Below are positions 19,798 through 59,800 of a DNA stretch of 64,000 nucleotides, piece after piece. The stretch spans positions 71,300,001-71,364,000 of the forward strand of contig NC_086374.1 in NCBI RefSeq assembly GCF_036588685.1. The letters are read 5' to 3'. Position 1 is the first letter of the stretch, and each line of letters opens with the position of its first letter. Source of the stretch: Mytilus trossulus. Taxonomy: Eukaryota. Under the pieces are notes generated by a model that worked only from the letters and a program-made list of their open reading frames with translations, did not search any database and was not told the origin of the DNA. The position numbers and the translations under genes were made by a program.

Positions 19798-19999
19798 TGT
19801 TACAGAAAATAGGTGAAATTAGGAATTACATGTAATTACTAAAATTTAGGAATTACAGGTAATCCCCGATGCACTTAGTTAATACAAGTAATTCCTGAAA
19901 CATATATATCATTGACGGTGGCCAATAATAGATGGTTACAAACATTTGATTTTGTTGCGAAATTTTATTAATCTTATCTTATTGATTTTATTGTCAAAG

Positions 20000-20385: not shown

Positions 20386-20689
20386 ATAAAAAGAAGTTAA
20401 CTGAGCCTTTTCGAGCAAATTTGACATGGGGGTATAATTGTTCAATTGGTCAAGATCTATCAGCCCTCACATTTTTATACAAATCGAACAACCCATTGTT
20501 GGATTGCTGCCACTAAATGGAAATTTACCTTGAATACTACTGAAAATAAAGAAAAACTGTAAATAACAAAAATGTTCAGCAAAGTATGGTAAACAAAATA
20601 TTTATATGAAAAAAATTGTCCCCTTAAGGAGTTGTTGCCCAAAAAGGACAATTTTACACAAGTTGTTTGATTTTTTTTAAAATGAATCT

Positions 20690-31824: not shown

Positions 31825-33519
31825 ATGACGTCAGCTAGTGGCACATTATGTGGTGTGTGTGCAACTCAGGATGTTTTTAGAGATGCCATTTTCTGGTGCC
31901 CTGAATGCGATGAAGGTCTATGCACAGCATGCGAAATGTACCATAGGGCTTCTAAATCCTCAAAAAAACACGAAGTAACTTCAGTGGATGATTATAAACA
32001 ATTACCGTCATCCATAGCAAATATCAAACAATACTGTTCTGACCATGAGGAAAAATATCAGCACTACTGTTCCCAACATGAGACCCTTTGTTGTCCACTT
32101 TGTCTCACGTCAAATCACATGAAATGTGATTTTTTAGCAATTGTTGAAGTCATCAAAACGTCCAAGATCTCTGCACTTTACGACATTATGGAACAAAGTA
32201 TCAAGGATATGAAAAGCAACCTAGAAAGAATAACAGACGACCGCGAGAAAAATTTGGAAGATATTCATGAACAGCGACAGAGATTCTCGACAGATATAAA
32301 AGAGATACGAGCAAAAATAAACAAACATCTAGATGAACTTGAACAAGAAATAGAACATAATATCCAAGCTGCGGAACAAAAAGCCATATCACAAGTAGAC
32401 ACAGTCCTTTCAAAAATCTCCAGCCATTCTAAAACAATAGATAAGCTACAGAAGAATATATCTGCGACTAAACATGTTGCTACTGACCTTCAGACATTTT
32501 TGGGCGGGAAAATGTTCGAGGCCGAGGTTCAAAAGGAGGAGAAGTTTATGCAGTCTTTAAAAGAAGATGGCGATTTTCAACAAATAAAACTAGAATGCAA
32601 AATTGATGACCATATTTCTGACATACTGTGTATGACACAGATGGGACAGATATCCATCACGGCAAATCCACCCACTATTACCGTGTCAACGAATAGAGAA
32701 AAGCATGCTCAACAAATGATACCGACGATACCAAAAACAATCAATGAAATCAACCTCACATTACTTGCGAGATTTGAGATATCGAAAAGGAAAGGACTTC
32801 AAATCTCGGGTTGCACTATCATGCCTTCCAGAAAAATAGTCTTTGTAGATCAAGTCAATCATAGTCTTGTAATTCACAACGAAAATGGAGTATTTGAAAG
32901 TGAAATTCTTGTATCACAAAGTCCTGTTGATGTTACGGGCATTGATGAAAACACCGTCGCGGTCACCCATAATTCAAGGCCTTATCATACCGAAGTTATT
33001 GACATTGCTAATAAACTGGTTGTAAAAATGATTAAAACGCCCAATATGTGCTACGGTATAACAAAAAGAGAAGGCAGATTGATATTTTATACTTTTGGGA
33101 CAGGTATTCAAACAGTCGATGTGACCGATGAAAGTACTTTCACCACATTAGTTAAAGTTGATTATAAAAATCACTCCAACTATGTAACAGCATCAAAGGA
33201 CGAGACATACCATGCATGCCCAGGCTCAAACACCGTCACATGCTACACAGTCACAGGACAGAAGATTTGGGAATACACACATGAATTAATGTTGCATGGG
33301 ATTCGAGATATAACTGTTGACAACGATTCCAATGTGTACGTGGCATCCTACGGGAATAACAATGTCGTCGTTATTTCACCAGATGGAAATGATGCTCATC
33401 GATTGTTAGGAGAAGAAAATGAGATTAAAAAACCTCATGGTATCCATATAGACAATAAGAAAAATAATTTACTGGTTGTCAACTTCTGTGGAACAGCATT
33501 TTTATATAACATTAAGTGA
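31825..33519 (+). CDS. B-box / coiled-coil / NHL-like beta-propeller protein (RING-less TRIM-like), paralog 1
   Basis: CGVC..WCPECDEGLCTAC..H..H (B-box1), C..H..YC..H..CC..C...H..C (B-box2), long heptad region, propeller repeats (DITVDNDSNVYVA, PHGIHID). Splice acceptor tattacag 6 nt before the ATG. Confidence 0.9.
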   Translation: MTSASGTLCGVCATQDVFRDAIFWCPECDEGLCTACEMYHRASKSSKKHEVTSVDDYKQLPSSIANIKQYCSDHEEKYQHYCSQHETLCCPLCLTSNHMKCDFLAIVEVIKTSKISALYDIMEQSIKDMKSNLERITDDREKNLEDIHEQRQRFSTDIKEIRAKINKHLDELEQEIEHNIQAAEQKAISQVDTVLSKISSHSKTIDKLQKNISATKHVATDLQTFLGGKMFEAEVQKEEKFMQSLKEDGDFQQIKLECKIDDHISDILCMTQMGQISITANPPTITVSTNREKHAQQMIPTIPKTINEINLTLLARFEISKRKGLQISGCTIMPSRKIVFVDQVNHSLVIHNENGVFESEILVSQSPVDVTGIDENTVAVTHNSRPYHTEVIDIANKLVVKMIKTPNMCYGITKREGRLIFYTFGTGIQTVDVTDESTFTTLVKVDYKNHSNYVTASKDETYHACPGSNTVTCYTVTGQKIWEYTHELMLHGIRDITVDNDSNVYVASYGNNNVVVISPDGNDAHRLLGEENEIKKPHGIHIDNKKNNLLVVNFCGTAFLYNIK

Positions 33520-34624
33520 TATTATTTAGCTTTTGTCCTCAGAAAATACAGACAGAAACACGTTAAAACCGCTGATTTGCAACTAAATTATGAATGTAAA
33601 TAGTGTTAGTAGTATTTCAATATTCAGCCCCATTCTACTAATTGGTCAGCCATCAGTCATACCCTGATATACACTATCTTTTTCGGGTAATTAATACTGA
33701 TAGCGTTCGACATTTCAGCCGAACAAATTTATCACTTTTACTTAACTTAATTATTGTATGCTGGTTCATATTCTGGACGCCAATCTTTGCTCCTTTATTA
33801 TGTAATTCACTAACAAAACAATTATGAAACTAAGAAACGGAAAAATACTAAATACTAAACTTGTTCAAAGGGTATCTACACGTCTCAATTTTCAAAATCG
33901 GTTATCTAAAAATACTACCATCGCTAACATTTTTAACAATAAAAATCGTGGTTACCCTTCTATCGATAAGTGTCATGCCAAAAAATGACTTACATGTCCC
34001 CGTCTTTCCACCAACAATACGGTAAGGTCCACGTTTAATGGTCGCACATTTTCTTTAAATTTTGAAACTGATATTACTTGAAAAACAAACAGTATTATTT
34101 ATTTACTCACATGAAACAAACCGGGATGTGGTATTCAGTACGTAGGAGAAACTGGAAGATATTTATCAAAACGCACTCAAGAACATCTGTATCGTTTTAA
34201 AAGACCTAATAAATTCAAAAGTATCATTTACCAACACCTTAAGAAGCACAACCATCCTTTTAAATATTTAGCAGTTCAACCTTTAGAAGTAGTAAATAAG
34301 CAGCCTGGTGAATCGCATTCAAAGTTTGTACGATCACGGAAAATAATTGAATTAAATTGGATTAAAAAATTACAGACAGTTTACCCTCTCGGTCTAAATG
34401 ATAATATCATGGGAAATGTATTTATCAATGTTATATAGAACACGTGTATTTGTTGTGACATTTGTCACATGACTAGATATACCGGTTTGAAGGTATTCTC
34501 TATAGAGTAATGAGTATTTCACGAGCTAATATAAGCGGGAAGAATTGTAACGGTAAATATATGTGTAGTTATTTGTCATTCGACGCTTGCATTTCGGACA
34601 GTTAAGTCTGGTCATTTCTTCAAT

Positions 34625-35377
34625 ATGGCCGAACATACAGAAGAAAGTTTACTTCTACAAGACGACTCGTTACCTGATAAAAGCAGTGATGGTGCTAACA
34701 GATCTTCTTCTGATAGGGACTTACATGACACGTTCTCTCTATTCAAGTTGTACATGGACGGGAAAATGGATAGCCTTGAATCCAAGTTGGTACGTGAACA
34801 AGACGCGATGTCCAAGAAGATAAAAGAGGAAGTCTCTATCAAGTTTAAGCACGAAGGAAACCGAATTCAATTTAAGTTTAATGAAGAAATCGTGAACGAT
34901 CTCAATAAGCTTTACAAGTCAATACCGTCAACAGAGGCACATAGTATTCGTGTTGTTCTGGATTTACTGGATAAAGTTAAAGGCCGTAATAAGCTTATAA
35001 GGATTGCTGATTCTTCCCCGGCAGGATGGTCAACCGTCCGTGAGTACGAGTCCAATGATATTGCTTCTGACAGTGAAGATGAGAAGAAAATTCGCCAGGC
35101 GGAGAGTCGAGCTATGCGCACGATGAAAGACAAGACAAAAGGACGTCCCGCTCCGTATTCTAACAAACCCAGATTGCCACCAGCTGAAACCTATGCTAAT
35201 CCTACCTACAATCAACAGTTTCAGAGGCAGCCCTTTCGTAACAGCGCCGCACGGCGTGAGCCGTGCCAGTCGGACATGTGCTTCTATTGTAAGCAGTTCG
35301 GGCATTGGAGAAAAAATTGCCCCCTCAGATCTGGATCTGTTGGTGCCGGATCGTCTGGACTTGCCAATCAAAAGTAA
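34625..35377 (+). CDS. gag: Gag-like protein with CCHC zinc knuckle
   Basis: CFYCKQFGHWRKNC. RNKLIRIADSSPAGW.TV.EY....ASDSEDEK is typical of DIRS-order gag. Confidence 0.9.
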   Translation: MAEHTEESLLLQDDSLPDKSSDGANRSSSDRDLHDTFSLFKLYMDGKMDSLESKLVREQDAMSKKIKEEVSIKFKHEGNRIQFKFNEEIVNDLNKLYKSIPSTEAHSIRVVLDLLDKVKGRNKLIRIADSSPAGWSTVREYESNDIASDSEDEKKIRQAESRAMRTMKDKTKGRPAPYSNKPRLPPAETYANPTYNQQFQRQPFRNSAARREPCQSDMCFYCKQFGHWRKNCPLRSGSVGAGSSGLANQK

Positions 35378-37427
35378 ATCTGCAGATGCACCCAGAAATG
35401 TAAATGATAAGTATAAAATTACTGATATAGATTGTTTTAAATGTGAATATGAGTCACAGTATGAATTAGATAATTTCTTAACTCAAATTCATTATTTTGA
35501 AGAAATTAGTCATAATTTAATGTCATTTACGGGTGTTAAAGGAAGGTTAGCCAAGCATGTAAAATTTTGGGAAAGTATTGGAGCAAATTCCTTTGTTATT
35601 GACACAATACGTAACGGTTATGTCATTCCATTTATTGACCCGCCGGTAAAAATGTTTATTAAGAATAATAAATCGGCACTGATAAACGAATCTTTTGTCA
35701 ATCAGACTATTTCTGAGTTAGTTACTACAGGTTGTGTTGTTGAAGTACCATTTCAACCTCATGTTGTCAATCCATTAAGCGTAGCGATTCAAAAATCTGG
35801 CAAAAAACGGCTTATTCTTGACTTATCTTCTTTAAATAGATCAATCAAAAAAGATAAAATAAAATTTGAAGATTGGAAGATAGCAGTTCAATATTTTCAG
35901 AGAGATTCGTACATGTATAAATTTGATTTAAGTTCTGGATATTTTCATTTGGACATTTGTCCGCAGCAACAAACCTTTTTAGGTTTCAGATGGAATAATA
36001 GATTTTATTGTTTTACAGTTTTAGTATTTGGTATATGTACGGGCCCATATATATTTACAAAATGTCTGAGACCTATGGTCAAATATTGGCGTGAAAACGG
36101 TATAGATGTTGTTTTGTACCTTGATGATGGTTTTGGTATGTGTACAGATAAATCTAAGTGTATAGAAGATTCAGATTTTGTTAAGAAATCTTTAGAAGAT
36201 GCCGGTTTTCTCATAAATGAAGGAAAGTCCATTTTTTCCCCTGTACAGTCATTAGAATGGCTTGGTATTGTTTGGAATGCTAGCGAATTTAGTCTCGTTA
36301 TCCCAGACAGACGTGTAAATGATTTGCGTGTATCGCTTGTGTCAGTTATTGGAAGATTTCCTAATATAACTGCTAGGACCTTAGCTCAGGTTGTAGGTAA
36401 AATTATTTCCATGGCTCCAGTCATTGGCAATGTAGCTAGAATTATGACAAAATTTTGTTATATGGCAATAGAGTGTAGAACAGAATGGGACAAATGGCTG
36501 TTATTTCCATATCCATACAAAGTCTTATCAGAACTGCATTTTTGGTTAAAAAACATACATAGTTTAAACATTAAGTTGTTGGGTCATTACTCAAAGTCAC
36601 ATGTTGTAATTTACTCTGACGCCAGTGGTAAAGGGGCAGGTGCATATTCAGTAGAACTTGACAAGAAGATTTTTCATGAAACGTGGGATTTTTCTGAAGC
36701 TCAAGAAAGTTCGACATGGAGGGAGTTGAAGGCTATAGAGCTAGCCTTGATATCTTTCAAAAATGTTTTTGAAGGCAAAACGCTTAAATGGTACACAGAT
36801 AATCAGAACTGTGTTAAAATTGTAAAAGCTGGTAGTATGAATGAAAAACTACAATTTTTAGCTTTGTCGATTTTTTCGGTCTGTATTCAAAAATGCATTT
36901 CCATTGACATTCAATGGATTCCTAGATCGCAAAACTCTCAAGCTGATTATATCAGTAGAATAGTTGATTACGAGGACTGGGGCGTATCAAATGAGTTTTT
37001 TCAATTTATGAATGATTTATGGGGTCCTTACACAATAGACCGGTTTGCAAATTCTCAGAATGCAAAAGTGTGTAGATACAATTCTATGTTTTGGAACCCG
37101 TGTGCAATAGCTGTAGATGCTTTTACACAAGATTGGTCAAATGAGAATAATTGGTTGGTACCACCTGTTTATTCGGTTATTCGGTGTATTAAGCACTTGA
37201 TTTACTGTAAGGCCAAAGGGACCTTGATTGTTCCTAAATGGAAATCGGCAGCCTATTGGACTAAGATTTTTGATAAAAACCTAGAATACCAGGTACATGT
37301 TACAGATGTAATTGAATTTATAGATACAGAAGGTATCTTTGTGAGAGGGTCGAACCCAAGTTCTATATTTGCTCAAGAACAATTCATAACACCAGTTTTG
37401 GCGGTTATGTTAGATGCTACTCGGTAG
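35193..37427 (+). CDS. pol: Reverse transcriptase / RNase H / DNA N6-adenine methyltransferase-like polyprotein
   Basis: KKRLILDL, FDLSSGYFH, VLYLDDG. RNase H YSDAS..WRELKA..YTDNQ..N..ADYISR. C-terminal IDRFA...DAF..DW....WLVPP MT-like domain. Overlaps gag in another frame. Confidence 0.93.
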   Translation: MLILPTINSFRGSPFVTAPHGVSRASRTCASIVSSSGIGEKIAPSDLDLLVPDRLDLPIKSKSADAPRNVNDKYKITDIDCFKCEYESQYELDNFLTQIHYFEEISHNLMSFTGVKGRLAKHVKFWESIGANSFVIDTIRNGYVIPFIDPPVKMFIKNNKSALINESFVNQTISELVTTGCVVEVPFQPHVVNPLSVAIQKSGKKRLILDLSSLNRSIKKDKIKFEDWKIAVQYFQRDSYMYKFDLSSGYFHLDICPQQQTFLGFRWNNRFYCFTVLVFGICTGPYIFTKCLRPMVKYWRENGIDVVLYLDDGFGMCTDKSKCIEDSDFVKKSLEDAGFLINEGKSIFSPVQSLEWLGIVWNASEFSLVIPDRRVNDLRVSLVSVIGRFPNITARTLAQVVGKIISMAPVIGNVARIMTKFCYMAIECRTEWDKWLLFPYPYKVLSELHFWLKNIHSLNIKLLGHYSKSHVVIYSDASGKGAGAYSVELDKKIFHETWDFSEAQESSTWRELKAIELALISFKNVFEGKTLKWYTDNQNCVKIVKAGSMNEKLQFLALSIFSVCIQKCISIDIQWIPRSQNSQADYISRIVDYEDWGVSNEFFQFMNDLWGPYTIDRFANSQNAKVCRYNSMFWNPCAIAVDAFTQDWSNENNWLVPPVYSVIRCIKHLIYCKAKGTLIVPKWKSAAYWTKIFDKNLEYQVHVTDVIEFIDTEGIFVRGSNPSSIFAQEQFITPVLAVMLDATR

Positions 37428-37603
37428 CGGTGACACGGTCATATACAAAATAGTTGACATGGTTACGTTTATTAATGATTTACCAATAATGTATTGGTGG
37501 TGACATGGTCAAGAATTATAGTTGACAAGGTCAAATGTATGTGACAAGACTTCTGGTTTAATGTGAAGTATGGTCATGCTAATTTTAAAATATATATTAT
37601 GTT

Positions 37604-38656
37604 TTGAGCTTATTAATTTTTATAACGTTAACACATTTTACAGACATTTTCAATGTTGGGATATGGCAATCATTGTCCAGCGATATTCATCCTAGTATGC
37701 CTGATCATCTTGTACAGAAGCTTCCAGATTATGTTCTATCGTCGAGGGCGGACAGCACCAGAAAGAAGTACACTTACGGATTCAACTCTTGGTGTAAGTG
37801 GTCAAAATTACATTGCATTTCTTCATTACCAGCTTCTACTGCTCATATTGCATTATACTTAGTTCATATATCAGAAACATTCAACTCTACAAGTAAAATA
37901 GATGAGGCTGTATATGCGATTTCTTGGGCACACAAGCTGGCCGGTTTTCCGAACCCTTGCAATTCCGACTTGGTTATTTCTGTTCGTGAAGGGTCATACA
38001 GAAAAATTGGACATAAAATTAATAAAAAGGAACCTATTACAGCTAACATTTTATCAAAAATTGTTCATTTATATGGTCAAGATTGTAATAATCTTAAAGA
38101 TGTACGCATTGCATGCATGTGCTTATTAAGTTATGCAGGATTTTTAAGATTTTCTGAATTAGCTAATTTGAAAAGATCTAATGTAACCTTTTTACCTACT
38201 CATGTTAAGCTATTTTTAGAACAGAGCAAAACTGATGTTTACAGGGAAGGTCGTGATGTAGTTATTTCTAAAACTGGAAATAATACTTGTCCAGTGGCTA
38301 TGTTAGAACATTATATGAAGTTAGCTCAAATAGCAGAAAATTCTGACGAATTTGTATTCAGGTCTTTAAGTTATTGTAGTAAAAGTGGAACTTATAAGTT
38401 AAGGAAAAATTCACCACTTTCATACACTAGAGCTAGAGAAGTTTTGTTGAATGCATTAGAAACCATCGGTTTAGATAAAAAACAGTTCGGTCTTCACAGT
38501 TTACGTTCAGGTGGAGCAACTGCTGCAGCAGCAGCAGGGGTTGAAGATCGTCTATTTAAAAAACATGGGCGATGGAAAAGCGAAAATGCTAAAGATGGTT
38601 ATATAAAAGAAAGTATAGATAATAGATTGTCAGTATCTAAAAAATTGGGTATATAA
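37604..38656 (+). CDS. Tyrosine recombinase (integrase)
   Basis: Catalytic R (GFLRFSE), K (SKTD), HSLRSGGAT, HGRW and Y (DGYIK). Start uncertain: TTG in the track, possible splice acceptor at 37643. Confidence 0.93.
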   Translation: MSLLIFITLTHFTDIFNVGIWQSLSSDIHPSMPDHLVQKLPDYVLSSRADSTRKKYTYGFNSWCKWSKLHCISSLPASTAHIALYLVHISETFNSTSKIDEAVYAISWAHKLAGFPNPCNSDLVISVREGSYRKIGHKINKKEPITANILSKIVHLYGQDCNNLKDVRIACMCLLSYAGFLRFSELANLKRSNVTFLPTHVKLFLEQSKTDVYREGRDVVISKTGNNTCPVAMLEHYMKLAQIAENSDEFVFRSLSYCSKSGTYKLRKNSPLSYTRAREVLLNALETIGLDKKQFGLHSLRSGGATAAAAAGVEDRLFKKHGRWKSENAKDGYIKESIDNRLSVSKKLGI

Positions 38657-41600
38657 GATATATATATTGCTGAAAAATAACTATTATCTGTTCCCTTTCT
38701 TTGTTTTTCATTCGATGCTTAACTGTACTGTCCAGGCGAGCTGATATCCCAAATAGTGTTTGGTTTTTTATTTATAAATATTTTATGTTCGTTTGAGTTG
38801 ACGAACAAGAACATAAATGTATTTATCAATGTTATATAGAACACGTGTATTTGTTGTGACATTTGTCACATGACTAGATATACCGGTTTGAAGGTATTCT
38901 CTATAGAGTAATGAGTATTTCACGAGCTAATATAAGCGGGAAGAATTGTAACGGTAAATATATGTGTAGTTATTTGTCATTCGACGCTTGCATTTCGGAC
39001 AGTTAAGTCTGGTCATTTGACCCCACCCACCCACCCACTTTTATTTTGTCAATATTGAAAATTGATGTATTCATGCTTAAGATTTATGTGGATGTTTTTT
39101 AAGATTATACGTGCTTGAAAAGATTGTTAACAAGATATTTCTTTTGTAGATTGTGTATAATTGGAAAATGATATGTTGAACATGTTGAAGCAGCGGCTAC
39201 GGGCGTGCAGACAAACATTGTAAATAAATGAATAAATATGCTTAACTGTACTGTCCAGGCGAGCTGATATCCCAAATAGTGTTTGGTTTTTTATTTATAA
39301 ATATTTTATGTTCGTTTGAGTTGACGAACAAGAACATAATTGGTAATATATCTAGAACCAATTCCGTTAACATTTTGGATATTGTTTCTAAAACTGTTCG
39401 TAAAAACCGTTCTCACGGTTGTAGAACAAATCGCAATCAAAGAAAATTTCGGGCCAATCATACCAATATTTCGGACCTTATTTCTATTTCAAAAAACAAC
39501 GGCAGACATTATCTGTTAACAAAACTCTGTTCGTTACCGGTTAATAAGTTAAATAAAATTTTGGAGGATTGCAACACAATTTCATATAGCAGTCCTAAGT
39601 ATGAAATTGTTCAAATTATTATGGCATATTGTTATTCTAAATTATTTCCCAAAATTGATCGCCCTGAAGATCATAAAAAACATTTTATTAAAATTAAGTA
39701 TGTCAACAAAGGCTTTGATTTTGTAAATATTGCCGGTATATTTAACGACCATTCTGTTAAAGAACAAATTCCTGGATATTTTGACAATACTGAGCTACCT
39801 CTTATTTGTTATATTTACAAGAAATCTACCCGGAAATTTGTGTTTAATTATAGTCAATTGTGTAAAGATGTTAATATCAGTGAAAATACACCTACTTCAT
39901 GTAATTGCAGTAATTCCGAATATATTTATGGACCCATTTCCCATGTTATAACAGGAGATCTTAACATCGTTCAAGACCGAGAGTTAAAATCATTTCTCAG
40001 TAAAGGACCTAAATATCGTCCCCCGTCAATTATTAATTGGAATGAGTGTCGTAATATCATCCACGACTCACTCCTTACTTACTGTATGAAATGGATAAAA
40101 CGGGAAAAAGCTGACAAAAAATCTTTGGACTCTTTTTTTCATTCAGTAATGAAGATAGTTGATATACGTATTCAACATTTTAAAGAACATTTTACTATTA
40201 ACAATAACCACAATAAACCTATTTCTCGTATCAAACATAAACTAAAAGAACTAGCCAAGGAATTTGTTTTTGTCCCGGCCGATAAAGCTGCTAATAATAT
40301 TATTATTGTTTGACGTAAATTTTACATCGAGGTTCTGAAAAAGGAAATCACCAATTCACCAACATTCCAACTGACTCCATTTTCAGAAAACGAAATCTGT
40401 AACAAACATAAACTTTTAGCCACCGCTTTACAAGCAGAGCCAAATACAATGAAAGTTCCAACTATGTATTGGCTTCCGAAGCTACACAAAACCCCTTACA
40501 AATATAGATTTATTTCGTCTTCAAGCCATTGTTCAACTACTAAATTGTCTATTATTCTTACCAGCACACTTGGTACAATTAAAAACCTTATAATAAATTG
40601 TTCAAATAAGGCCTTCGAAAATAGTGGAATAAATTACTTTTGGAGTGTCAAGAACTCGTTGGAAGTACTTGATAAATTGCATGCTTATATTGGTGATTTT
40701 GAATCTGTTCAAAGTTTTGATTTTTCTACCCTGTATACCACATTGCCTCACATTCTCATTAAGAAAAAATTCACACATCTAATTAAATGGGCATTCAAAA
40801 AATCAGAATGTGAATATATATGTTCAAACTCTTTTAGGTCATTTTTTAGTAGCAATAAACAAAAAAACTATGTTAATTGGACATGCTTTGATACTATATA
40901 TGCCCTTGAATTTTTACTAGATAACATTTTTGTTCGCTTTGGGGATTCCGTATATCGTCAGATTATCGGAATTCCAATGGGGACTAACTGTGCACCACTT
41001 ATTGCGGACCTCTTTTTGTATTGTTACGAGTTACAATTTATGACAAAAATAAGCAAAGACCCATCAAAACAACATCTGATAAACTAATTTAATAATACTT
41101 TTAGATATTTGGATGATATTTTGGCTCTCAATAATGACGACTTCAGTATGTATATTAATGAAATTTATCCTGGTGAACTCACTTTAAATAAAGCTAATAC
41201 TAACAATGACCACTGCCCTTTCCTCGATCTTGATATCTATATCACTAACGGAAAGCTGAATACTAAAATTTATGATAAAAGGGATGATTTTTCATTTCCT
41301 ATCGTTAATTATCCGTTTTTAGATGGTGACGTTCCCTTGTCACCATCTTACGGTGTTTATATATCTCAACTTGTACGATTCGCTCGTGTATGTAACAATG
41401 TTTTAGATTTTAACGAGAGAAATTTATGTATTACTGAAAAATTATTACACCAGGGTTTTCGATATCACAAACTAGTCAAAACATTTACTAAATTTTATCA
41501 TCGGTATAAAGACATCATTCGTAAATATAGCTCAACATGCAGACTTTTTATACGTTCAGGTATTTCACATCCAATTTTTTATGGAAATATTCTTTATAAA

Positions 41601-41806
41601 GCACAAAGGTGTCAGTATTCACCTCATAAACTTACAAAACCTTTGAATAGACTTATTAAGAAGGGATATAATTACGATACTGTTGTCAAGTCATTAAAGA
41701 TTGCATATTTTGGCGTTAATATTGAGTCACTGATAAGGTCTTTGCGTCGGAACTAAACACATTTATTCTAAAAACAGTTGTTGGCATGACACGGGTTATG
41801 TTCTTC

Positions 41807-41873
41807 TCATATATGTTATGATGGTATGATACTAAACCCCTTACGGGAAGGATTGTGCCTGATGTTCATATGA
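41807..41873 (+). promoter_or_regulatory. SECIS element (type II) of Naiad copy 1
   Basis: Identical to 45823-45889. Confidence 0.85.
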
Positions 41874-42763
41874 TGAAATCATAATCTTTCAGTCAGTTTA
41901 ATTGAAGTCTGGAGCTGGCATGTCAGTTAACTGCTAGTAGTCTGTTGTTATTTATGTATTATTGTCATTTTGTTTATTTTCTTTGGTTACATCTTCTGAC
42001 ATCAGACTCGGACTTCTCTTGAACTGAATTTTAATTTGCGTATTGTTATGCTTTTACTTTTCTACACTGGTTAGAGGTATAGGGGGAGGGTTGAGATCTC
42101 ACAAACATGTTTAACCCCGCCGCATTTTTGCGCCTGTCCCAAGTCAGGAGCCTCTGGCCTTTGTTAGTCTTGTATTATTTAAATTTTAGTTTCTTGTGTA
42201 CAATTTGGAAATTAGTATGGCGTTCATTATCACTGAACTAGTATATATTTGTTTAGGGGCCAGCTGAAGGACGCCTCCGGGTGCGGGAATTTCTCGCTAC
42301 ATTGAAGACCTGTTGGTGACCTTCTGCTGTTGTGTTTTTTTATTTTGGTCGGGTAGTTGTCTCTTTGACACATTCCCCATTTCCATTCTCAATTTTATTT
42401 TTTACAAAGTTTGTCTTTAGTGCCGTGTGGAGGCAGTAGAGTGCCTCCCCGTGCTTCAGGTTTATGCTCTTATAATATACTAGATTATGGAGTGTGTGTC
42501 CGAGCGAGAACTTCTCTAGTTCATTACTTTAGGAATGTTTATCAAAAAGTAGTATTTCAATATTCAGCCCCATTCTACTAATTGGTCAGCCATCAGTCAT
42601 ACCCTGATATACACTATCTTTTTCGGGTAATTAATACTGATAGCGTTCGACATTTCAGCCGAACAAATTTATCACTTTTACTTAACTTAATTATTGTATG
42701 CTGGTTCATATTCTGGACGCCAATCTTTGCTCCTTTATTATGTAATTCACTAACAAAACAATT

Positions 42764-45700
42764 ATGAAACTAAGAAACGGAAAAATACTAAATACTAAAC
42801 TTGTTCAAAGGGTATCTACACGTCTCAATTTTCAAAATCGGTTATCTAAAAATACTACCATCGCTAACATTTTTAACAATAAAAATCGTGGTTACCCTTC
42901 TATCGATAAGTGTCATGCCAAAAAATGACTTACATGTCCCCGTCTTTCCACCAACAATACGGTAAGGTCCACGTTTAATGGTCGCACATTTTCTTTAAAT
43001 TTTGAAACTGATATTACTTGAAAAACAAACAGTATTATTTATTTACTCACATGAAACAAACCGGGATGTGGTATTCAGTACGTAGGAGAAACTGTAAGAT
43101 ATTTATCAAAACGCACTCAAGAACATCTGTATCGTTTTAAAAGACCTAATAAATTCAAAAGTATCATTTACCAACACCTTAAGAAGCACAACCATCCTTT
43201 TAAATATTTAGCAGTTCAACCTTTAGAAGTAGTAAATAAGCAGCCTGGTGAATCGCATTCAAAGTTTGTACGATCACGGAAAATAATTGAATTAAATTGG
43301 ATTAAAAAATTACAGACAGTTTACCCTCTCGGTCTAAATGATAATATCATGGGAATTGGTAATATATCTAGAACCAATTCCGTTAACATTTTGGATATTG
43401 TTTCTAAAACTGTTCGTAAAAACCGTTCTCACGGTTGTAGAACAAATCGCAATCAAAGAAAATTTCGGGCCAATCATACCAATATTTCGGACCTTATTTC
43501 TATTTCAAAAAACAACGGCAGACATTATCTGTTAACAAAACTCTGTTCGTTACCGGTTAATAAGTTAAATAAAATTTTGGAGGATTGCAACACAATTTCA
43601 TATAGCAGTCCTAAGTATGAAATTGTTCAAATTATTATGGCATATTGTTATTCTAAATTATTTCCCAAAATTGATCGCCCTGAAGATCATAAAAAACATT
43701 TTATTAAAATTAAGTATGTCAACAAAGGCTTTGATTTTGTAAATATTGCCGGTATATTTAACGACCATTCTGTTAAAGAACAAATTCCTGGATATTTTGA
43801 CAATACTGAGCTACCTCTTATTTGTTATATTTACAAGAAATCTACCCGGAAATTTGTGTTTAATTATAGTCAATTGTGTAAAGATGTTAATATCAGTGAA
43901 AATACACCTACTTCATGTAATTGCAGTAATTCCGAATATATTTATGGACCCATTTCCCATGTTATAACAGGAGATCTTAACATCGTTCAAGACCGAGAGT
44001 TAAAATCATTTCTCAGTAAAGGACCTAAATATCGTCCCCCGTCAATTATTAATTGGAATGAGTGTCGTAATATCATCCACGACTCACTCCTTACTTACTG
44101 TATGAAATGGATAAAACGGGAAAAAGCTGACAAAAAATCTTTGGACTCTTTTTTTAATTCAGTAATGAAGATAGTTGATATACGTATTCAACATTTTAAA
44201 GAACATTTTACTATTAACAATAACCACAATAAACCTATTTCTCGTATCAAACATAAACTAAAAGAACTAGCCAAGGAATTTGTTTTTGTCCCGGCCGATA
44301 AAGCTGCTAATAATATTATTATTGTTTGACGTAAATTTTACATCGAGGTTCTGAAAAAGGAAATCACCAATTCACCAACATTCCAACTGACTCCATTTTC
44401 AGAAAACGAAATCTGTAACAAACATAAACTTTTAGCCACCGCTTTACAAGCAGAGCCAAATACAATGAAAGTTCCAACTATGTATTGGCTTCCGAAGCTA
44501 CACAAAACCCCTTACAAATATAGATTTATTTCGTCTTCAAGCCATTGTTCAACTACTAAATTGTCTATTATTCTTACCAGCACACTTGGTACAATTAAAA
44601 ACCTTATAATAAATTGTTCAAATAAGGCCTTCGAAAATAGTGGAATAAATTACTTTTGGAGTGTCAAGAACTCGTTGGAAGTACTTGATAAATTGCATGC
44701 TTATATTGGTGATTTTGAATCTGTTCAAAGTTTTGATTTTTCTACCCTGTATACCACATTGCCTCACATTCTCATTAAGAAAAAATTCACACATCTAATT
44801 AAATGGGCATTCAAAAAATCAGAATGTGAATATATATGTTCAAACTCTTTTAGGTCATTTTTTAGTAGCAATAAACAAAAAAACTATGTTAATTGGACAT
44901 GCTTTGATACTATATATGCCCTTGAATTTTTACTAGATAACATTTTTGTTCGCTTTGGGGATTCCGTATATCGTCAGATTATCGGAATTCCAATGGGGAC
45001 TAACTGTGCACCACTTATTGCGGACCTCTTTTTGTATTGTTACGAGTTACAATTTATGACAAAAATAAGCAAAGACCCATCAAAACAACATCTGATAAAC
45101 AAATTTAATAATACTTTTAGATATTTGGATGATATTTTGGCTCTCAATAATGACGACTTCAGTATGTATATTAATGAAATTTATCCTGGTGAACTCACTT
45201 TAAATAAAGCTAATACTAACAATGACCACTGCCCTTTCCTCGATCTTGATATCTATATCACTAACGGAAAGCTGAATACTAAAATTTATGATAAAAGGGA
45301 TGATTTTTCATTTCCTATCGTTAATTATCCGTTTTTAGATGGTGACGTTCCCTTGTCACCATCTTACGGTGTTTATATATCTCAACTTGTACGATTCGCT
45401 CGTGTATGTAACAATGTTTTAGATTTTAACGAGAGAAATTTATGTATTACTGAAAAATTATTACACCAGGGTTTTCGATATCACAAACTAGTCAAAACAT
45501 TTACTAAATTTTATCATCGGTATAAAGACATCATTCGTAAATATAGCTCAACATGCAGACTTTTTATACGTTCAGGTATTTCACATCCAATTTTTTATGG
45601 AAATATTCTTTATAAAGCACAAAGGTGTCAGTATTCACCTCATAAACTTACAAAACCTTTGAATAGACTTATTAAGAAGGGATATAATTACGATACTGTT

Positions 45701-45772
45701 GTCAAGTCATTAAAGATTGCATATTTTGGCGTTAATATTGAGTCACTGATAAGGTCTTTGCGTCGGAACTAA
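42764..45772 (+). CDS. 1002-aa GIY-YIG endonuclease - CxC - reverse transcriptase; predicted selenoprotein with 4 Sec (codons 55, 86, 97, 522)
   Basis: One frame from ATG 42764 to TAA 45770-45772, interrupted only by TGA at 42926, 43019, 43052 and 44327. Reads KCHAKK*LTC, DIT*KTNSIIYLLT*NKPGCGIQYVGET, EH..QH, ELNWIKKLQTVYPLGLN, linker SCNCS, DKAANNIIIV*RK, YWLPKLHK, FDFSTLYT, GIPMG, RYLDD. Confidence 0.9.
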
Positions 45773-45822
45773 ACACATTTATTCTAAAAACAGTTGTTGG
45801 CATGACACGGGTTATGTTCTTC

Positions 45823-45889
45823 TCATATATGTTATGATGGTATGATACTAAACCCCTTACGGGAAGGATTGTGCCTGATGTTCATATGA
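45823..45889 (+). promoter_or_regulatory. SECIS element (type II) of Naiad copy 2
   Basis: Helix I TCATAT/ATATGA. Core ATGA (45834-37) with TGAT (45876-79). Helix II GGTATGAT/ATTGTGCC. Unpaired AAA at 45850-52, 12 nt after ATGA. Apical mini-stem CCC/GGG. Confidence 0.87.
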
Positions 45890-48570
45890 TGAAATCATAA
45901 TCTTTCAGTCAGTTTAATTGAAGTCTGGAGCTGGCATGTCAGTTAACTGCTAGTAGTCTGTTGTTATTTATGTATTATTGTCATTTTGTTTATTTTCTTT
46001 GGTTACATCTTCTGACATCAGACTCGGACTTCTCTTGAACTGAATTTTAATTTGCGTATTGTTATGCTTTTACTTTTCTACACTGGTTAGAGGTATAGGG
46101 GGAGGGTTGAGATCTCACAAACATGTTTAACCCCGCCGCATTTTTGCGCCTGTCCCAAGTCAGGAGCCTCTGGCCTTTGTTAGTCTTGTATTATTTAAAT
46201 TTTAGTTTCTTGTGTACAATTTGGAAATTAGTATGGCGTTCATTATCACTGAACTAGTATATATTTGTTTAGGGGCCAGCTGAAGGACGCCTCCGGGTGC
46301 GGGAATTTCTCGCTACATTGAAGACCTGTTGGTGACCTTCTGCTGTTGTGTTTTTTTATTTTGGTCGGGTAGTTGTCTCTTTGACACATTCCCCATTTCC
46401 ATTCTCAATTTTATTCATTGCTACCTTAAATTACTGAACAATAAGCATTGTTGATGTATTGTCATTACGCTGTTTTGAATGTAGTTTCTAAAGTTTCATC
46501 AACTATATTTATACTTGTTACTAGCCTAATGCTTGGTTGTCTGTATATTTGAGAACGCATAAACTATGGTTTAAATTAGACTGTTGAATTTATGGTATAA
46601 CATATAACATTCGAATACGAGATATTCTATTTTTCTGGTTAGGCTAACTTTTATAAATGTCCACGAGACAGAATTCCAACTCCAGCTCTAAAAATCGTCG
46701 TTATTTTTTTTTTCTTTTTATGAGCATCTGGTGTGGTATTTGGGTCATATGAGGTTAATACCATCTCATCAGCCATTAGTTAATACTGTTCAACAGGTGA
46801 TCGGTAGTATGCACTGAGGAAAATGAAATCTTGGTATTGTTTACAGTTTTGTATAATTTCGGTATTTATCTTTTTGAATCGCATTTAATATACATTAGAA
46901 ATAATAGGGAAACCCTTTCTGTTAATTGGTAATTTCTGCAGAAATATTAATTCTATGATCATAGCCGTCACCAATAGATTAATCAAGTAATATTAGCATT
47001 CAATGTTAGTTGTCTGTCATTTAAGTTTGGCATTATGAAATGCGAATATTCGTCTGATTACTTTGATATTTAAAATTCAAGAAACAATATAACAGCCGTT
47101 TTTTACAAAAATTATCATCACCGGAAGAAATGTTTTAAAGTTGGATAATTAGATAATATAATTAAATAGATAGGGAAGTATTTGATTTTGTGAGCTGATC
47201 TGAAATTCGAAAAGCACCACAGAACATAATTTGACATTGTACATCTAATAGGTATACTTGAAAACAGCTTTGTTTAACATATAACGGATGTTATGCAAGG
47301 CTAAATTCTCTTTATTTTAATCTGCAGAAGAGTTCATTGAATACATTTTTACTTCATATTATATAAATATCACAGCTTTATGTTGAAACTTTTTGGCTTT
47401 GAAGATTTTTTTTTAATTTTGATTTCAAAATATACTTTAAATACAAAATAACCAAAAAAGAAAAATGCGTAAGGGTTCGGCGGAACCCAGTGACTCTTGT
47501 GCAAGCTGGACAAAAAAGTGAAAAAAAATATTCAAAATTTACCTATAAATACTGTCTTTTGATTGTAAGACACTTTTGTTCAATTTTGGTAAAAATCCAG
47601 GATGGTTTATTATGAATGTAATAAATGTTTTAAAAAATTTAACAGGTCGAGACCACTACCTTATATGGAAATGCATGAATTAGCATACTTATGTCCTCGC
47701 ACATGTTATTGTTTATTTACGTGTGAAGCAATTTATTTTTACCTGAGTTTTTGACCAATCCACTAAATGAATAACAATGCATGGTGGACTACTACGTGCA
47801 TGTTTACTAGTCTATCAACCAAACACGCGTGTTATTTACTGTAATACAACACTTTTTTTTTGCAATGCGGGCTTAACAATTTCGGTTAGTTTTTAATTTT
47901 TTGTATCCACATTTATAGTTCGTAATATAAAGTATTCGTTCCATGCTCAGATTAACTTAGAGTTGTTTCTAAGCGAAAAAATAAGTGTTTGAATTACCCG
48001 ATATACAGCCATTAATATATTTGATGAAGACACGGAGATTTCAGAAATTCGTCCACTAGACTGCAGCGAAACAACAGTGGAAAACACAAAGACCCACCAA
48101 ACAAACTGGTTTAGAGAAAGTCGTCGATAATAGCCGGTGCTAATATTCATGAGTGCAGCAACTTTTGAATACTGGTAGCTAGTTAAAGAAAAATATATGA
48201 TCCTTGAATTTTGTGTTCGTTAAAAGGCGAAAACTTACAGTTAGTCAAATATCTGATTAGATCACTAAACTTTCTCAAAAATTGAAAACAACACATTTAA
48301 TAATTTCTTGCGTCCGAAGCGCTTTTCTGGATTGACCTTCACCTTCACTCAAAGCAAAACATTTGAAATACGAAGATGTATAAGTACCGAAAACGTTGAA
48401 GAGCTTTCAACGCCGATCGCTGGTGAAAATGTTCCGCTTTGAAATGTATGTTTACATACATTGCATTCAGTCATATTTGCTTATGTGATCTTATTGGGTA
48501 GAACTTTGACTGAGGATCCTTTAAACAAATCAACTATAAGCAGCTCTTACATCTATTTTCTAATTAATTA

Positions 48571-52616: not shown

Positions 52617-54314
52617 ATGACTTCAGCCAGTGGACCATTATGTGATGTATGTGAAACCCAGGATGTGGTTATAAACGCCATTTGCTGGTGCCCTGAATGC
52701 GATGAAGGTCTATGCACATCATGCGAAAAGTACCATCGGGCTTCTAAATCCTCAAAAAATCACGAAGTAACTTCAGTGGGTGATTATCAACAATTACCGT
52801 CATCCATAGCAAATATCAAACAATACTGTTCTGACCATGAGGAAAAATATCAGCACTACTGTTCCCAACATGAGACCCTTTGTTGTCCGCTTTGTCTCAC
52901 GTCAAATCACAGGAAATGTGATTTTTTAGCGATTGGTGAAATCATCAAAACGTCAAAGACCTCCGCACTTTTCGACATTATGGAACAAAATATCAAGGAT
53001 ATGAAAAGCAATCTAGAAAAAATAACAGACGATCGCAGGAAAAATTTGGAAGATATTCATCAACAACGACAGCAGTTCCTGACAGATATAAAAGAGATAC
53101 GAGAAAAAATGAACAAACATCTAGATAAACTTGAACAAGAAGTGGAACAGAATATCCAAACTGCGGAACAAAAAGCCAAATCACAAATAGAAACACTTCT
53201 TTCAAACATCTCCGGCCATTGTAAAACAATAGATAAGCTACAGCAGAATATATCTGCGACTAAACATCTTGCCACTGATCTTCAGACATTTTTGGGCGGA
53301 AAAATGTTTGAAGCTGAGATTCAAAAGGAAGAGAAGGTCATGCAGTCTTTAATAGAAAAGGGAGATTTGCAACAAATAAACCTACAATGCAAAATTGATG
53401 ATAAGTTGTCCAAAATACTGTCCTTGGCAAATATGGCAGAGATATCTATTATAACAAATCAACCCAGTATTACAATGACGACGGTTGGATATAAACAAGC
53501 TCAACAAATTGTACCGAAGATTTCAAAAACAATCAAAGACATCAATCCTACTTTACTAGCGAGATTTGAAATACCTAAACAGGGGAAAGCACCTGCAATC
53601 ACAGGCTGCACTATCATGCCTACACAAAAAATTATCTTTGTAGATCAAGCCAATGATCGTCTTGTAATCCACAATGAAAATAATTCATTTCATAGTGAAA
53701 TACCTGTATCACATTGGCCCATAGATGTAACTTGTATTGATAAAAATACCGTCGCTGTCACTCATAATGCAGAGCCTTATCATATAGAAATCATCAACAT
53801 CGCCGATAGAAAGATTGTTAAAAGGATTAAAACGTCCAATATGTGCTACGGCATTTCACATATACAAGGTAGACTGATATATTATGAAACAGGAAGTGGT
53901 ATTATAACAGCAGATATCACTGATGAAAGTACTGTCACCACAGTAGTTAAAGTCGATGGCGAGCAAACCTGGAACTATATTACAACATCAAAAGACAAGA
54001 TATACCGTACAAACCAAATCAGAAAATCCGTCACATGCTACACAATCACAGGGAAGAAGCTTTGGAAATACAAAGACAAATCAATTCTTAAAGGGATTCA
54101 TGACTTAACTGTTGATAATGATTCTAACGTGTATGTGGCATCCAAAGAGAATAGCAGTGTCGTCGTACTTTCACCAGATGGAAAGCACACTCGTCGATTT
54201 TTAGTAAAAGTAAATGGGATTAAAGACCCACTTGCAATATATTTTGACACAAGGAGAAATATTCTACTTGTTACTAACCTTAGAGGACCAGCATTTTTAT
54301 ACAAAATTAAATGA
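52617..54314 (+). CDS. B-box / coiled-coil / NHL-like beta-propeller protein (RING-less TRIM-like), paralog 2
   Basis: Colinear with 31825-33519 (565 vs 564 aa). Same acceptor context tattacag..aagaATG. Confidence 0.9.
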   Translation: MTSASGPLCDVCETQDVVINAICWCPECDEGLCTSCEKYHRASKSSKNHEVTSVGDYQQLPSSIANIKQYCSDHEEKYQHYCSQHETLCCPLCLTSNHRKCDFLAIGEIIKTSKTSALFDIMEQNIKDMKSNLEKITDDRRKNLEDIHQQRQQFLTDIKEIREKMNKHLDKLEQEVEQNIQTAEQKAKSQIETLLSNISGHCKTIDKLQQNISATKHLATDLQTFLGGKMFEAEIQKEEKVMQSLIEKGDLQQINLQCKIDDKLSKILSLANMAEISIITNQPSITMTTVGYKQAQQIVPKISKTIKDINPTLLARFEIPKQGKAPAITGCTIMPTQKIIFVDQANDRLVIHNENNSFHSEIPVSHWPIDVTCIDKNTVAVTHNAEPYHIEIINIADRKIVKRIKTSNMCYGISHIQGRLIYYETGSGIITADITDESTVTTVVKVDGEQTWNYITTSKDKIYRTNQIRKSVTCYTITGKKLWKYKDKSILKGIHDLTVDNDSNVYVASKENSSVVVLSPDGKHTRRFLVKVNGIKDPLAIYFDTRRNILLVTNLRGPAFLYKIK

Positions 54315-56694: not shown

Positions 56695-56840
56695 CTAAAA
56701 TTGAGAATGGAAATGGGGAATGTGTCAAAGCGACGACAACAACCCGACCATGGAACGTACAACAGCAGAAGGTAACCATGTGGCTTAAATGTAGCAAGAA
56801 ACTCCCGCACCCGGAGGCGTCCTTTAGCAGGCCCCTTAAA
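56695..56840 (-). repeat. Short relic of the Naiad 3' terminus (another at ~60880-60940)
   Basis: TAAAATTGAGAATGGAAATGGGGAATGTGTCAAAG is the reverse complement of the element end at ~46380-46412. Confidence 0.85.
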
Positions 56841-59800
56841 ATATATGGGAATAAGACTTGCAAAGGCCAATAAATTAGCATACCAAATATAATTCACTTA
56901 ACATAAGCAGTTCATCTTAAACTGATTTTATCACATACTAATACATAGAAACTCAGCAAAATGTTTCAAAGTCAATAGCCATTGACTGAGAGGGTGTGGC
57001 CAAATTATCTCCATGGAAATGAGATATGCTAATGGTTATACAACTGCATACCAATTAACATTGCCCTTACACTTATGGTTCTCCTTGAACTGACATAATG
57101 ACAAACTTAAAACATATAAACTTAGCAAAATTTTCAATTCAATAGACCATGACTAAGGGGATGGAGTCAAATAATCTCCATGGAAATAAGATATTCCAAT
57201 GCTAAATTTCTTTATACACTAAATATAGATATGCAATCTGTTTCTCTAATGAATCTACTATTGAAATCAAATAAGCAACATCATTTATTTTTAAAAAACC
57301 TCCTGATTCTTGTAAATACTTCTAAACAACTAGAAAAAAGTTCTCATATTTTCATCAGCTACATAAACTGTAATTTTTTCCTTCATACGGAACACCTCAA
57401 CATGACTTTTATCAAGTTATGAAATTAAATATTAGAATTTAATATAATTCTGATTAACTGATCATGATATGTTTTTGTTGTAGCTATAGTTGTTTATTGT
57501 CTTGTCGGATTGCTCTGTAGAGTAAAAGATTCTACTGTTTCAACCATCATCCCAGTTTTATTTCTAAAAAAAATTAAAAATAAAATGAATAACTAAAGAA
57601 CTTTATCCATATCCATTTATTATGATCATACACATGGATTTAATGTTATTACAAGAATATCAATCTTATTAATATTTTAAACAATATGAAAAACTGTGTC
57701 CTAGCTTGCCCAACATGGAGAAGTATAGCAGGATCAAGTTTGTCTGTTTAAATCCCTTTCATTTTAAAGTCCTCCTCTGCTCTTAAATCATAGAAAGAAA
57801 CTGAAATTATCAAGGATATCGCCAACCAATTAGTCAGAAATTCTGTGTTGAAATGAATCTACACAGATTTTGTCATAATTTAAAATTTAATGTAATACAA
57901 AAGTTTTTTTCTAAACGCTAAGGATTTTCTATCCCAGGAATAGGTTAGTTTAGCTGTATTTGACAAAAATCTTTATTGGTTGCTCTACAACTTAATATTC
58001 AATTTTGCAATTTTAACTTTTCAGAATCACCAATGAGACGAAATGCATGGCTGTCGTAAAAACTTTTATTCAAAATGGCATTAGAATGGCACCTGTAAAT
58101 GCACATGCAATGAAATAAAAGACTTTACATAGACATAGACATTAAGATAAGCATCTACATCTAAAGCCTGTTCAGGATGAAAATATTGGTTGGTCACAGT
58201 GACCTACAATCATTTTATTGCAAGCCCCCCCACTACAATGATGTAAATGTCAATCAACATGATCTACACAGAGCATATGTTCATGGACAGCTGGGGTAAA
58301 GCAAAATGGTAAACTGGACAACTTCTTTAACAATAACATTAATGGCTACTCAGAATCCAGTGGCAAATATTAAATGCATATTCAGATATCGACAATTAAA
58401 TGAAAATGAACAAATTAATAATTAATTTTGAAATACATTACATACAAACCTTCATTTGAATCATATATTAGGTTTAAACTACTGTAGCTGGTCAATGTTG
58501 TAACAATCAACATGCTGGAGATCCAAAACTGTGAAATCTTGAAAGAATACATCCAAAGTATGGCGATACTTTTCTCTGCGCCTTAACCGCACAAGAAACT
58601 TTTTTCCTGAAACAAAACAATCATTTCTGCATTTTTCAAATAGAATGTGCCATTAAAATTTTTTTTCCTTCCTAAGAGCTTGCAGTAAACTATGAACACT
58701 TGAGGAAGTTTTCATTATCGAAGTGAACTTGTTAGGTTCTGTGTCATTGTGGTCTCTTGTGGTAAGTTGTCTCATTGGCAATTATACCACATCTTCATGA
58801 GTGCAACAAAAAGCAATAAGTATTTTAAAATTACTCTTTCTTTCTACCACAATTGGAAAATTAATGCTGATATTTAAGTAAGAAAGTGCTAGGATAATAA
58901 TAAGGTCACATATTGGTTCAGTCAAACCATGGCACAATTTATCATGTGATTAAAAAATGATTGTAAAAATGAAGGAACTATAAAAAAAATCTTATAATTA
59001 ACTTAGGTGCTCTGAAAGGGGAAGAAATTACCGATCCACTATTTGCACTTGCCTTGTTGGCATGAAAAATAAAAATCTGGTTATATATTAAACTTGGATC
59101 ATGTCTTTCTATGTAAGATTTTTTTTCTGTAGGTATTTTCACTTACCTTTCAATGTCTGTATTTTCTTTATAATCAAGACTAGCATGATACTGCTGTACA
59201 AGGTCTTTTCTGAAATGTCCTCTACTCTACAATTCTACTGGTATACTGCAAGTTCCATACAGTCTGTAATGAAACATTTAACATACTATAAATGTTTTAA
59301 ATATAGCTTGTTATAGGTCGGACTCAGAAAATACATTTTTATTCTTTTTTTTATATTTCAAATTATAAATAGAGATTTTTTAAAGGGGAAAGTGTCATGA
59401 GTATTGTAACACATATAAAACTATAAAAAAAATGTATATTTAAGGCAGTATGTCCATGGCTTTTAATTCCCCCCTCTCCAAAACTGCTCAGTTCTTAGTG
59501 TGATTTTGTACTGGTGTGCAAATGGAACAATGATGTATTAAAACATTTGTTTTATCATTCATATCCTTGTAATGAGTATCTATGTATTTGAGATTATAAG
59601 ATTTCTGAAGTAGCTACTAAAATAAATAACAATATGTATTGATGGATAAACAATGTTTCAATCTGACAAAAGGTAGATTTTTATGATAAGGTTTTAGTAA
59701 TGGGTATATTGACAGACTTATAAAAACACTTTTCTTAGAAATTAAGGACCAATAAAAAAGCAAACTTATGTCCTTATAAGTTATGTTGCACAGTCTCAGC

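Follow-up and report, generated by a model that had tools for sequence, protein, structure and literature searches.

A Naiad retrotransposon of Mytilus trossulus with four UGA codons at conserved cysteine positions that are probably read as selenocysteine

We analysed a stretch of 64,000 nucleotides from Mytilus trossulus (the window; positions 71,300,001 to 71,364,000 of the forward strand of contig NC_086374.1, assembly GCF_036588685.1) and found in it a Naiad retrotransposon whose long open reading frame (ORF) is crossed by four in-frame UGA codons. We propose that this element encodes an endonuclease–reverse transcriptase in which the four UGAs are read as selenocysteine (Sec) by means of a Sec insertion sequence (SECIS) in its own 3' untranslated region (UTR), a reading to which we give a probability of about 90%. 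All coordinates of features below are positions in the window unless a contig is named, and the element lies on the plus strand.

The interrupted frame and its SECIS element

The ORF, identified by translation, by its homologues and by the ratio of nonsynonymous to synonymous substitution rates (dN/dS), occupies 42764-45772 and consists of 1002 sense or TGA codons followed by a TAA. The nearest in-frame stop upstream is a TAA at 42743, and internally the frame is interrupted solely by TGAs, which lie at 42926, 43019, 43052 and 44327. Because the G+C content of the window is 33%, about 7.5% of random codons, or one in approximately 13, would be stops, so an open frame of this length is not a product of chance and represents real coding sequence. 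The two ORFs that had been called here (43349-44329 and 44465-45772) are pieces of this frame. A preliminary description of this DNA had claimed a single frame with four TGAs as its sole internal stops, had placed both called ORFs within it and had given the sequence contexts of the TGAs; re-translation of 42764-45772 agreed on all three points. UGA 1 (42926-42928, codon 55) lies within C-H-A-K-K-U-L-T-C (codons 50-58), where it takes the second Cys column of a CX2-5CxxC finger. UGA 2 (43019-43021, codon 86) lies within I-T-U-K-T-N (84-89) at the Cys just before the GIY motif, and UGA 3 (43052-43054, codon 97) opens U-N-K-P-G-C (97-102) as the first Cys of a CCHH finger, between IIY (91-93) and YVG (106-108). 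UGA 4 (44327-44329, codon 522) closes DKAANNIIIVU (512-522), at a Cys eight residues past DKA at the N terminus of the reverse transcriptase (RT). The other 26 cysteines of the ORF are encoded by TGT or TGC. For alignments and computations, the UGAs were entered in the frame as X.

Aligning the frame with 38 full-length homologues, one row of which (P0093) proved to be non-homologous, bore out the earlier expectation of Cys at all four positions: each UGA column holds Cys in every homologue that truly covers it, save for a Ser in P0143 at column 1. Cys was present in 26 of 28 aligned homologues at UGA 1, in 32 of 33 at UGA 2 (the exception being P0093), in all covering homologues but P0093 at UGA 3, and in 36 of 36 true homologues covering UGA 4. 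The family has approximately nine conserved Cys columns, seven of them at least 90% Cys, and the UGAs occupy four of these nine or so. The ORF offers 462 one-step paths to a nonsense codon, of which about nine fall in conserved Cys codons, and the chance that four random nonsense hits would all land there is about 1e-7.

Judged by its motifs, the architecture of the element matches the definition of Naiad elements (PMC8557442), as had been proposed for it earlier. By motif coordinates, the endonuclease region (42911-43345) carries the CX4UX2C finger, the GIY motif (IIY), the U/CCHH finger, the YIG motif (YVG) and conserved R, H, E and N residues, the last in GLNDN. The CCHH finger consists of U97-x4-C102 between GIY and YIG with His at 138-144, and C50-x4-U55-x2-C58 lies upstream of it; two finger ligand positions are thus encoded by UGA. 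The linker (43412-44032, also by motif coordinates) contains a KR-rich stretch (217-235), a CxC motif (S-C-N-C-S, 384-388), whose cysteines at codons 385 and 387 are nearly invariant in the family alignment, and GPKY (420-423). The RT part comprises the 480 residues after UGA 4 (44330-45769), with motif A as FDFSTLY, motif B as GIPMGTNCAP and motif C as YLDD; the DKA motif at codons 512-514 stands just ahead of it. The RT motifs, at codons 657-848, are C-terminal to IIY and YVG, so the endonuclease is N-terminal within one ORF. Between motifs A and B there are 84 residues; from this spacing and the helices in the structural model an insertion in the fingers domain (IFD) appears to be present between them.

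Homology and structure searches point in the same direction. The RT piece of 480 residues matched 25,986 database representatives at E ≤ 0.001, and the full-length homologues (900-1100 residues) match Pfam GIY-YIG (PF01541) N-terminally (up to 33 bits; cut-off 22.6) and RVT_1, weakly, at the C terminus. The family profile gave weak matches among PDB sequences to the I-TevI catalytic domain (E = 0.007) and to a group II maturase. An AlphaFold model of the RT piece had a mean predicted local distance difference test score (pLDDT) of 86.8, and in a fold search its 13 best PDB matches were all telomerase RTs (E from 4e-9 to 3e-7). Pfam returned nothing useful for four separate ORF pieces, because the pieces cut inside the GIY-YIG domain and the RTs of Penelope-like elements (PLEs) are too diverged for RVT_1. 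An Rfam search of 33000-47000, made with family models rather than relaxed descriptors, found no hammerhead ribozyme family at E ≤ 1.

This arrangement bears on the possibility that the protein is made in pieces, by termination at the UGAs and re-initiation, giving separate endonuclease fragments and an RT. Met residues do occur after some of the UGAs, and the called ORFs start at 43349 and 44465. However, UGAs 2 and 3 are only 11 codons apart within the GIY-YIG core, and the resulting fragments would not fold as a nuclease. Moreover, the residues directly after each UGA, ahead of any Met, are conserved in the homologues, and a SECIS would be without a role in such a scheme. We regard piecewise synthesis as the least probable of the three alternatives that we weighed.

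The predicted SECIS element lies in the 3' UTR at 45824-45888 on the plus strand, 51 nt past the TAA, and is a full-length, conserved and covarying match to the Rfam SECIS_1 family (32.8 bits, E = 0.0028, gathering score 35). It comprises an AUGA core, a 10-bp helix II, an AAA, a 3-bp apical mini-stem and a UGAU on the 3' side, and it was matched at the equivalent place in copy 1, the second copy of the element in the window. We examined the same region in relatives of the element, L044-L058, which are marine metagenome contigs. Rfam detects a SECIS in L044, L045, L046, L047 and L056, and a covariance model built from four sequences placed one after the ORF in L048, L049, L052, L054, L055 and L057 and, weakly, in L050. 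In a MAFFT alignment of the four sequences, 93% of cells were paired and 6 of 18 pairs were changed on both sides, against 29-47% paired cells and 0-1 double-changed pairs in controls with slid partners. A wider, model-fitted alignment of nine distinct and more diverged sequences showed double changes in 16 of 18 pairs.

Two matches to tRNA-Sec were found in the genome, scoring 79.6 and 77 bits where the cut-off is 47. We also observed tandem arrays at C10:63843916-64492367, with a period of approximately 890-900 bp, of an 81-nt tRNA-like unit that scores 45.9 bits with the tRNA-Sec model, just below the cut-off; these are probably genes for long-arm tRNAs (Ser or Leu) and not for tRNA-Sec. 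A reassigned genetic code was considered and rejected, as three host ORFs in the window end in TGA, two of them TRIM-like and one fucosyltransferase-like.

It could still be argued that the UGAs are decoded in some other way, by near-cognate read-through as Trp, Cys or Arg or by local reassignment, and that the stem-loop is not a working SECIS. UGA followed by C is a leaky stop context, and C is the next base at sites 1 and 4. The SECIS_1 score falls slightly short of the Rfam gathering score. Set against this, host ORFs terminate at TGA and the 26 other cysteines of the element are TGT or TGC, and four successive read-throughs at typical efficiencies would leave a negligible amount of product. 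The AUGA, AAA and GA features, their fixed place after the ORF in all families and the compensatory changes also speak for a working SECIS, and the UGA columns correspond specifically to Cys. We consider decoding as another residue improbable, although it is the strongest of the three alternatives to Sec decoding.

Selection and persistence of the UGA codons

The relatives allowed us to follow the UGAs over a range of divergence. L044 has 99% protein identity to the window element and has TGA at sites 1, 2 and 3. L045 and L046 have 93% protein identity, carry the same four TGAs and have no other stops. The best match to the L045/L046 lineage in the genome that contains the window is 93% at the DNA level; this lineage is thus missing from that genome and comes from another organism. 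Between the window element and L045, dS was 0.31 and dN was 0.030, giving a dN/dS of 0.10. By segment, dN/dS was 0.05 before UGA 1, 0.097 over codons 98-521 and 0.11 after UGA 4; all four changes in the interval between UGAs 1 and 2 were synonymous, and no difference was seen over the ten codons that separate UGAs 2 and 3. These substitution patterns indicate that purifying selection acts across and after the UGAs.

At greater distance, L048 and L051 have 62-63% protein identity to the window element and are saturated at synonymous sites. Both retain TGA at the four sites and have a fifth at column 385, the first Cys of the CxC motif. Among the related families, TGA was found only where others have TGT or TGC, at columns 55, 86, 97, 385, 434 and 522. 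Sites 1, 2 and 3 are TGA in L044, L045, L046, L048 and L051; column 385 is TGA in L048, L051 and L057; and column 522 is TGA in the window, L045, L048, L050 and L058 and TGT or TGC in L047, L052, L053, L055 and L057. In a quick RT tree with unnamed database homologues of the same architecture, the related families formed one clade with 100% support, and all outgroups had Cys. We also observed that L055 has a TGA at column 434, the conserved Cys of N-W-N-E-C-R, together with TGT at site 4 and no other stops in the aligned part; column 434 of L055 may be a further Sec position.

We then asked how the UGAs fare among copies in the host genome (1.30 Gb in 541 contigs searched). At least 38 full-length copies at ≥99% identity were present (of 4,689 first-look candidates). 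All 30 of the young copies that we fetched keep the four TGAs, and 26 of the 30 have no other stop. By these counts the window family is very young, high in copy number and recently active, the last as the preliminary description had supposed. That description had also asked whether TGA is retained in genomic copies, and it is. A pattern census of site 1 gave 353 matches, with TGA 87, TTA 8 and other 5 among the 100 listed; site 3 gave 406 matches and site 4 gave 942, with TGA in 99 of the 100 listed in each case. The rise in match counts toward the 3' end fits 5' truncation. Site 2 was TGA in 11 of 12 variant-selected copies covering it, in addition to all 30 young copies. Compared site by site, an older and the young subfamily show 24 fixed differences in the ORF, of which 17 are synonymous and 7 nonsynonymous, where neutrality would give 21% synonymous (P = 2e-7).

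Because the copies first fetched with TTA at site 1 were old ones, we considered that UGA 1 might be a recent gain from TTA. This was rejected: an unbiased census of the old subfamily gave TGA 71, TTA 10 and other 3 (n = 84), so TGA is ancestral at site 1 and TTA is a persistent minority.

The genome also holds a second young Sec-Naiad family, of the L048 type (L048:2036-3481), with 63% protein identity to the window family and five TGAs, for example at C6:25320622-25323922. Among 5,835 first-look candidates, at least 40 copies of this type match L048 at 98-100% identity.

These data also bear on whether the TGAs might be true stops, the copies being non-autonomous or dead and spread in trans by a Cys-encoding relative. 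Standard gene callers do split the frame, the nearest database proteins begin past the fourth UGA column, and copies with TTA at site 1 have spread as well. Yet dN/dS is about 0.1 in sizeable segments before, between and after the TGAs, across lineages of different organisms, and purifying selection is evident between the subfamilies too. The TGAs are kept at 63% protein identity with saturated synonymous sites, and they fall only on conserved Cys columns. The searches run in the genome found no close Cys-encoding relative; the nearest with Cys at site 4, L047, matches there at 77%. Spread of dead copies in trans is very improbable on this evidence, somewhat less likely than decoding of the UGAs as another residue. 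Taken jointly, the three alternatives leave only a small chance that the UGAs are not Sec codons.

Several observations nevertheless weigh against Sec decoding. The SECIS_1 match falls 2 bits short of the curated gathering threshold. Folding the 3' UTR to minimum energy gives a structure whose stability is not out of the ordinary (z = -1.18), so fold energy by itself lends no support to a SECIS. Four Sec insertions on a single SECIS would imply a low yield of protein per mRNA. Finally, TTA (Leu) occupies site 1 in 8-12% of copies, in both subfamilies and in some frames that are otherwise open (two such copies, L032 and L033), which means that Sec at site 1 may not be required; among the listed copies, sites 3 and 4 show no propagated variant of this kind. 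An earlier prediction that TGA would toggle only with TGY stands among the diverged relatives, and it fails within the family at this one site.

Decoding of Sec in eukaryotes uses SBP2, eEFSec and Sec-tRNA. If the element uses this pathway, the SECIS in its 3' UTR would recruit the Sec-specific elongation machinery and the four UGAs would be read as Sec. Translation would then run the full length of the ORF and yield a protein whose N-terminal GIY-YIG endonuclease is joined through a CxC linker to a telomerase-like RT. In this protein, Sec would stand in place of Cys as the second ligand of the CX4CX2C finger, before the GIY motif, as the first ligand of the CCHH finger and eight residues past DKA. 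This endonuclease–RT would then mobilise its own RNA by target-primed reverse transcription, which would leave tandem or 5'-truncated arrangements known as pseudo-long terminal repeats ('pseudo-LTRs'). We infer both the physical insertion of Sec and the advantage that it would confer, whether as a metal ligand, through a redox property or by throttling translation. Mobility of the element may depend on the selenium supply of the host, as the preliminary description had supposed. A more speculative idea, which we think unlikely, is that fluidity in Sec usage (six Cys columns alternating between UGA and UGY, four or five Sec in individual families and a spreading Leu variant at one site) is itself adaptive, the number of UGAs tying the output of the transposition enzyme to the selenium supply of the host or to tissues with high Sec decoding; as a by-product, the SECIS elements scattered by thousands of 5'-truncated copies could create host selenoproteins.

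Tandem copies and their surroundings

The window contains two copies of the element. Copy 2 is a complete unit of 4016 bp (42400-46415), delimited by the period of the self-comparison and by the ends of 30 genomic copies, and consists of a 364-nt leader (5' UTR), the ORF and a 643-nt trailer (3' UTR). Copy 1 lies upstream, also on the plus strand, in two parts. Its 5' part (33608-34418) starts at unit position 149, is 99.75% identical to 42548-43358 and contains UGAs 1-3 at 33986, 34079 and 34112; its 3' part (39338-42399) contains UGA 4 at 40311, a TAA at 41085 and the SECIS at 41808-41872. Self-comparison revealed that 43354-46415 recurs at 39338-42399 with 99.9% identity and an offset of 4016 bp, and that 42548-43358 recurs at 33608-34418. 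Tandem Repeats Finder did not detect the tandem in the window, because the period of 4016 bp exceeds its limit. Copy 1 is 5'-truncated and stands head-to-tail with the complete copy 2, which is the 'pseudo-LTR' arrangement typical of PLEs.

In the 30 other genomic copies, the 3' ends map to the equivalents of 46413-46420. Solo copies begin at 42385-42544; the rest run into a 5'-truncated upstream tandem copy, and upstream partial copies of varying length are common among these 30 loci. The two copies in the window differ at four bases. The preliminary description had reported that the tandem copies share all four TGAs and that one copy has a nonsense change of its own, and we found the same: all four TGAs are common to both copies, and the TAA at 41085 is AAA in copy 2, making it a nonsense change private to copy 1. 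Copy 2 has a private G-to-T change at 43095, which converts the Gly after Y-V-G-E-T to Val (codon 111); this residue is Gly in copy 1 and in 29 other copies.

Copy 1 is split by a 4.9-kb insertion (34419-39337), for which copy 2 provides the empty site at approximately 43358. The ORFs of the insertion encode a zinc knuckle (34625-35377), an RT/RNase H with a match to a Dam-like methyltransferase (35193-37427) and a tyrosine recombinase (37604-38656), and they end, in order, in TAA, TAG and TAA. The insertion is a DIRS-type retroelement. Older fragments at 19992-20394, 56696-56846 and 60876-60925, all on the minus strand, are 82-86% identical to the part of the Naiad trailer downstream of the SECIS, and resemble relics of 5'-truncated copies that related families inserted earlier. 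The surroundings also include two paralogous intronless ORFs, at 31825-33519 and 52617-54314 (564 and 565 aa), with B-box zinc fingers, a coiled coil and a beta-propeller-like C terminus (TRIM-like); the Naiad tandem begins 89 bp past the first of these. Another intronless ORF (5200-6159, 319 aa) matches glycosyltransferase family 11 (fucosyltransferase) with an E value of 3e-41.

Comparison with known systems

The preliminary description had stated that Sec-encoding Naiads are already known from clams and spiders, and this is confirmed by the published account of four such families (Craig et al. 2021, PMC8557442). Two UGA positions are common to the four: the Cys ahead of GIY and the Cys eight residues past DKA. 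In the clam families UGA also encodes the first Cys of the CCHH finger, with a further UGA in RT6(D) of Naiad_Scon; in the spider families it is found at the first, or at the first and second, Cys of CX2-5CxxC, and an independent origin was inferred for them (PMC8557442). The published SECIS elements were assigned to type I; they lie 1-21 nt past the stop, except in Naiad_Mmer, where the two overlap (PMC8557442). In Chlamys, the CCHH finger and the upstream CX2-5CxxC finger are both absent (PMC8557442).

Judged against these descriptions, the window family is a new Naiad family, set apart from the published Sec-Naiads. It resembles the clam families Naiad_Scon and Naiad_Mmer in its architecture, tandem insertions, three of the UGA sites, a SECIS in the 3' UTR and a marine, bivalve-like setting. 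Unlike them, it uses UGA for the second Cys of CX2-5CxxC, otherwise reported solely for a spider family, and unlike Naiad_Scon it has no UGA in RT6(D). Its SECIS, 51 nt past the stop, carries an apical mini-stem in the Rfam alignment (form 2-like), in contrast to the distance of 1-21 nt and the type I form of the published elements. The spider families Naiad_Sdum and Naiad_Smim share with it UGAs at Cys columns in the CX2-5CxxC finger, ahead of GIY and eight residues past DKA, as well as a SECIS of their own. They differ in using the first (and second) Cys of CX2-5CxxC and in not using the CCHH Cys. Absent from the published account (PMC8557442) are the use of Sec, within this marine clade, for the second Cys of CX4UX2C, the UGAs in the CxC motif and at column 434, the second young family of the genome with its fifth UGA, and the Leu variant at site 1. 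A literature search for other reports of Sec-coding transposons beyond that account found none.

The comparative support presented here is much stronger than that from in-frame UGAs in a consensus, as it includes conservation of the UGAs between organisms at a dN/dS of 0.1, switching between Sec and Cys, and covariation in the SECIS. Three places join the list of probable Sec positions: the CxC motif, column 434 and, in a clam-like clade, the second ligand of CX4CX2C. One genome holds at least two young and abundant Sec-Naiad families. Standard annotation splits such elements or calls them pseudogenes. Thousands of SECIS copies will also confuse selenoprotein gene finders, and new host selenoproteins could plausibly draw their SECIS elements from them.

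The canonical Penelope, Poseidon and Neptune PLEs share with the window element a TERT-like (telomerase-like) RT with DKG or DKA, a GIY-YIG domain with the CCHH finger, and pseudo-LTR or tandem copies; they differ in that their endonuclease is C-terminal and a hammerhead ribozyme is usual. We know of no case of Sec in these canonical elements. Selenoprotein P and other multi-Sec selenoproteins likewise have several UGA-Sec codons per mRNA and a SECIS in the 3' UTR. Selenoprotein P, however, is an unrelated protein with two SECIS elements and a Sec-rich transport tail, whereas in the window element Sec would replace structural or metal-binding Cys in the enzyme of a mobile element. The family would thus offer a natural system with several Sec residues at zinc-finger ligand positions.

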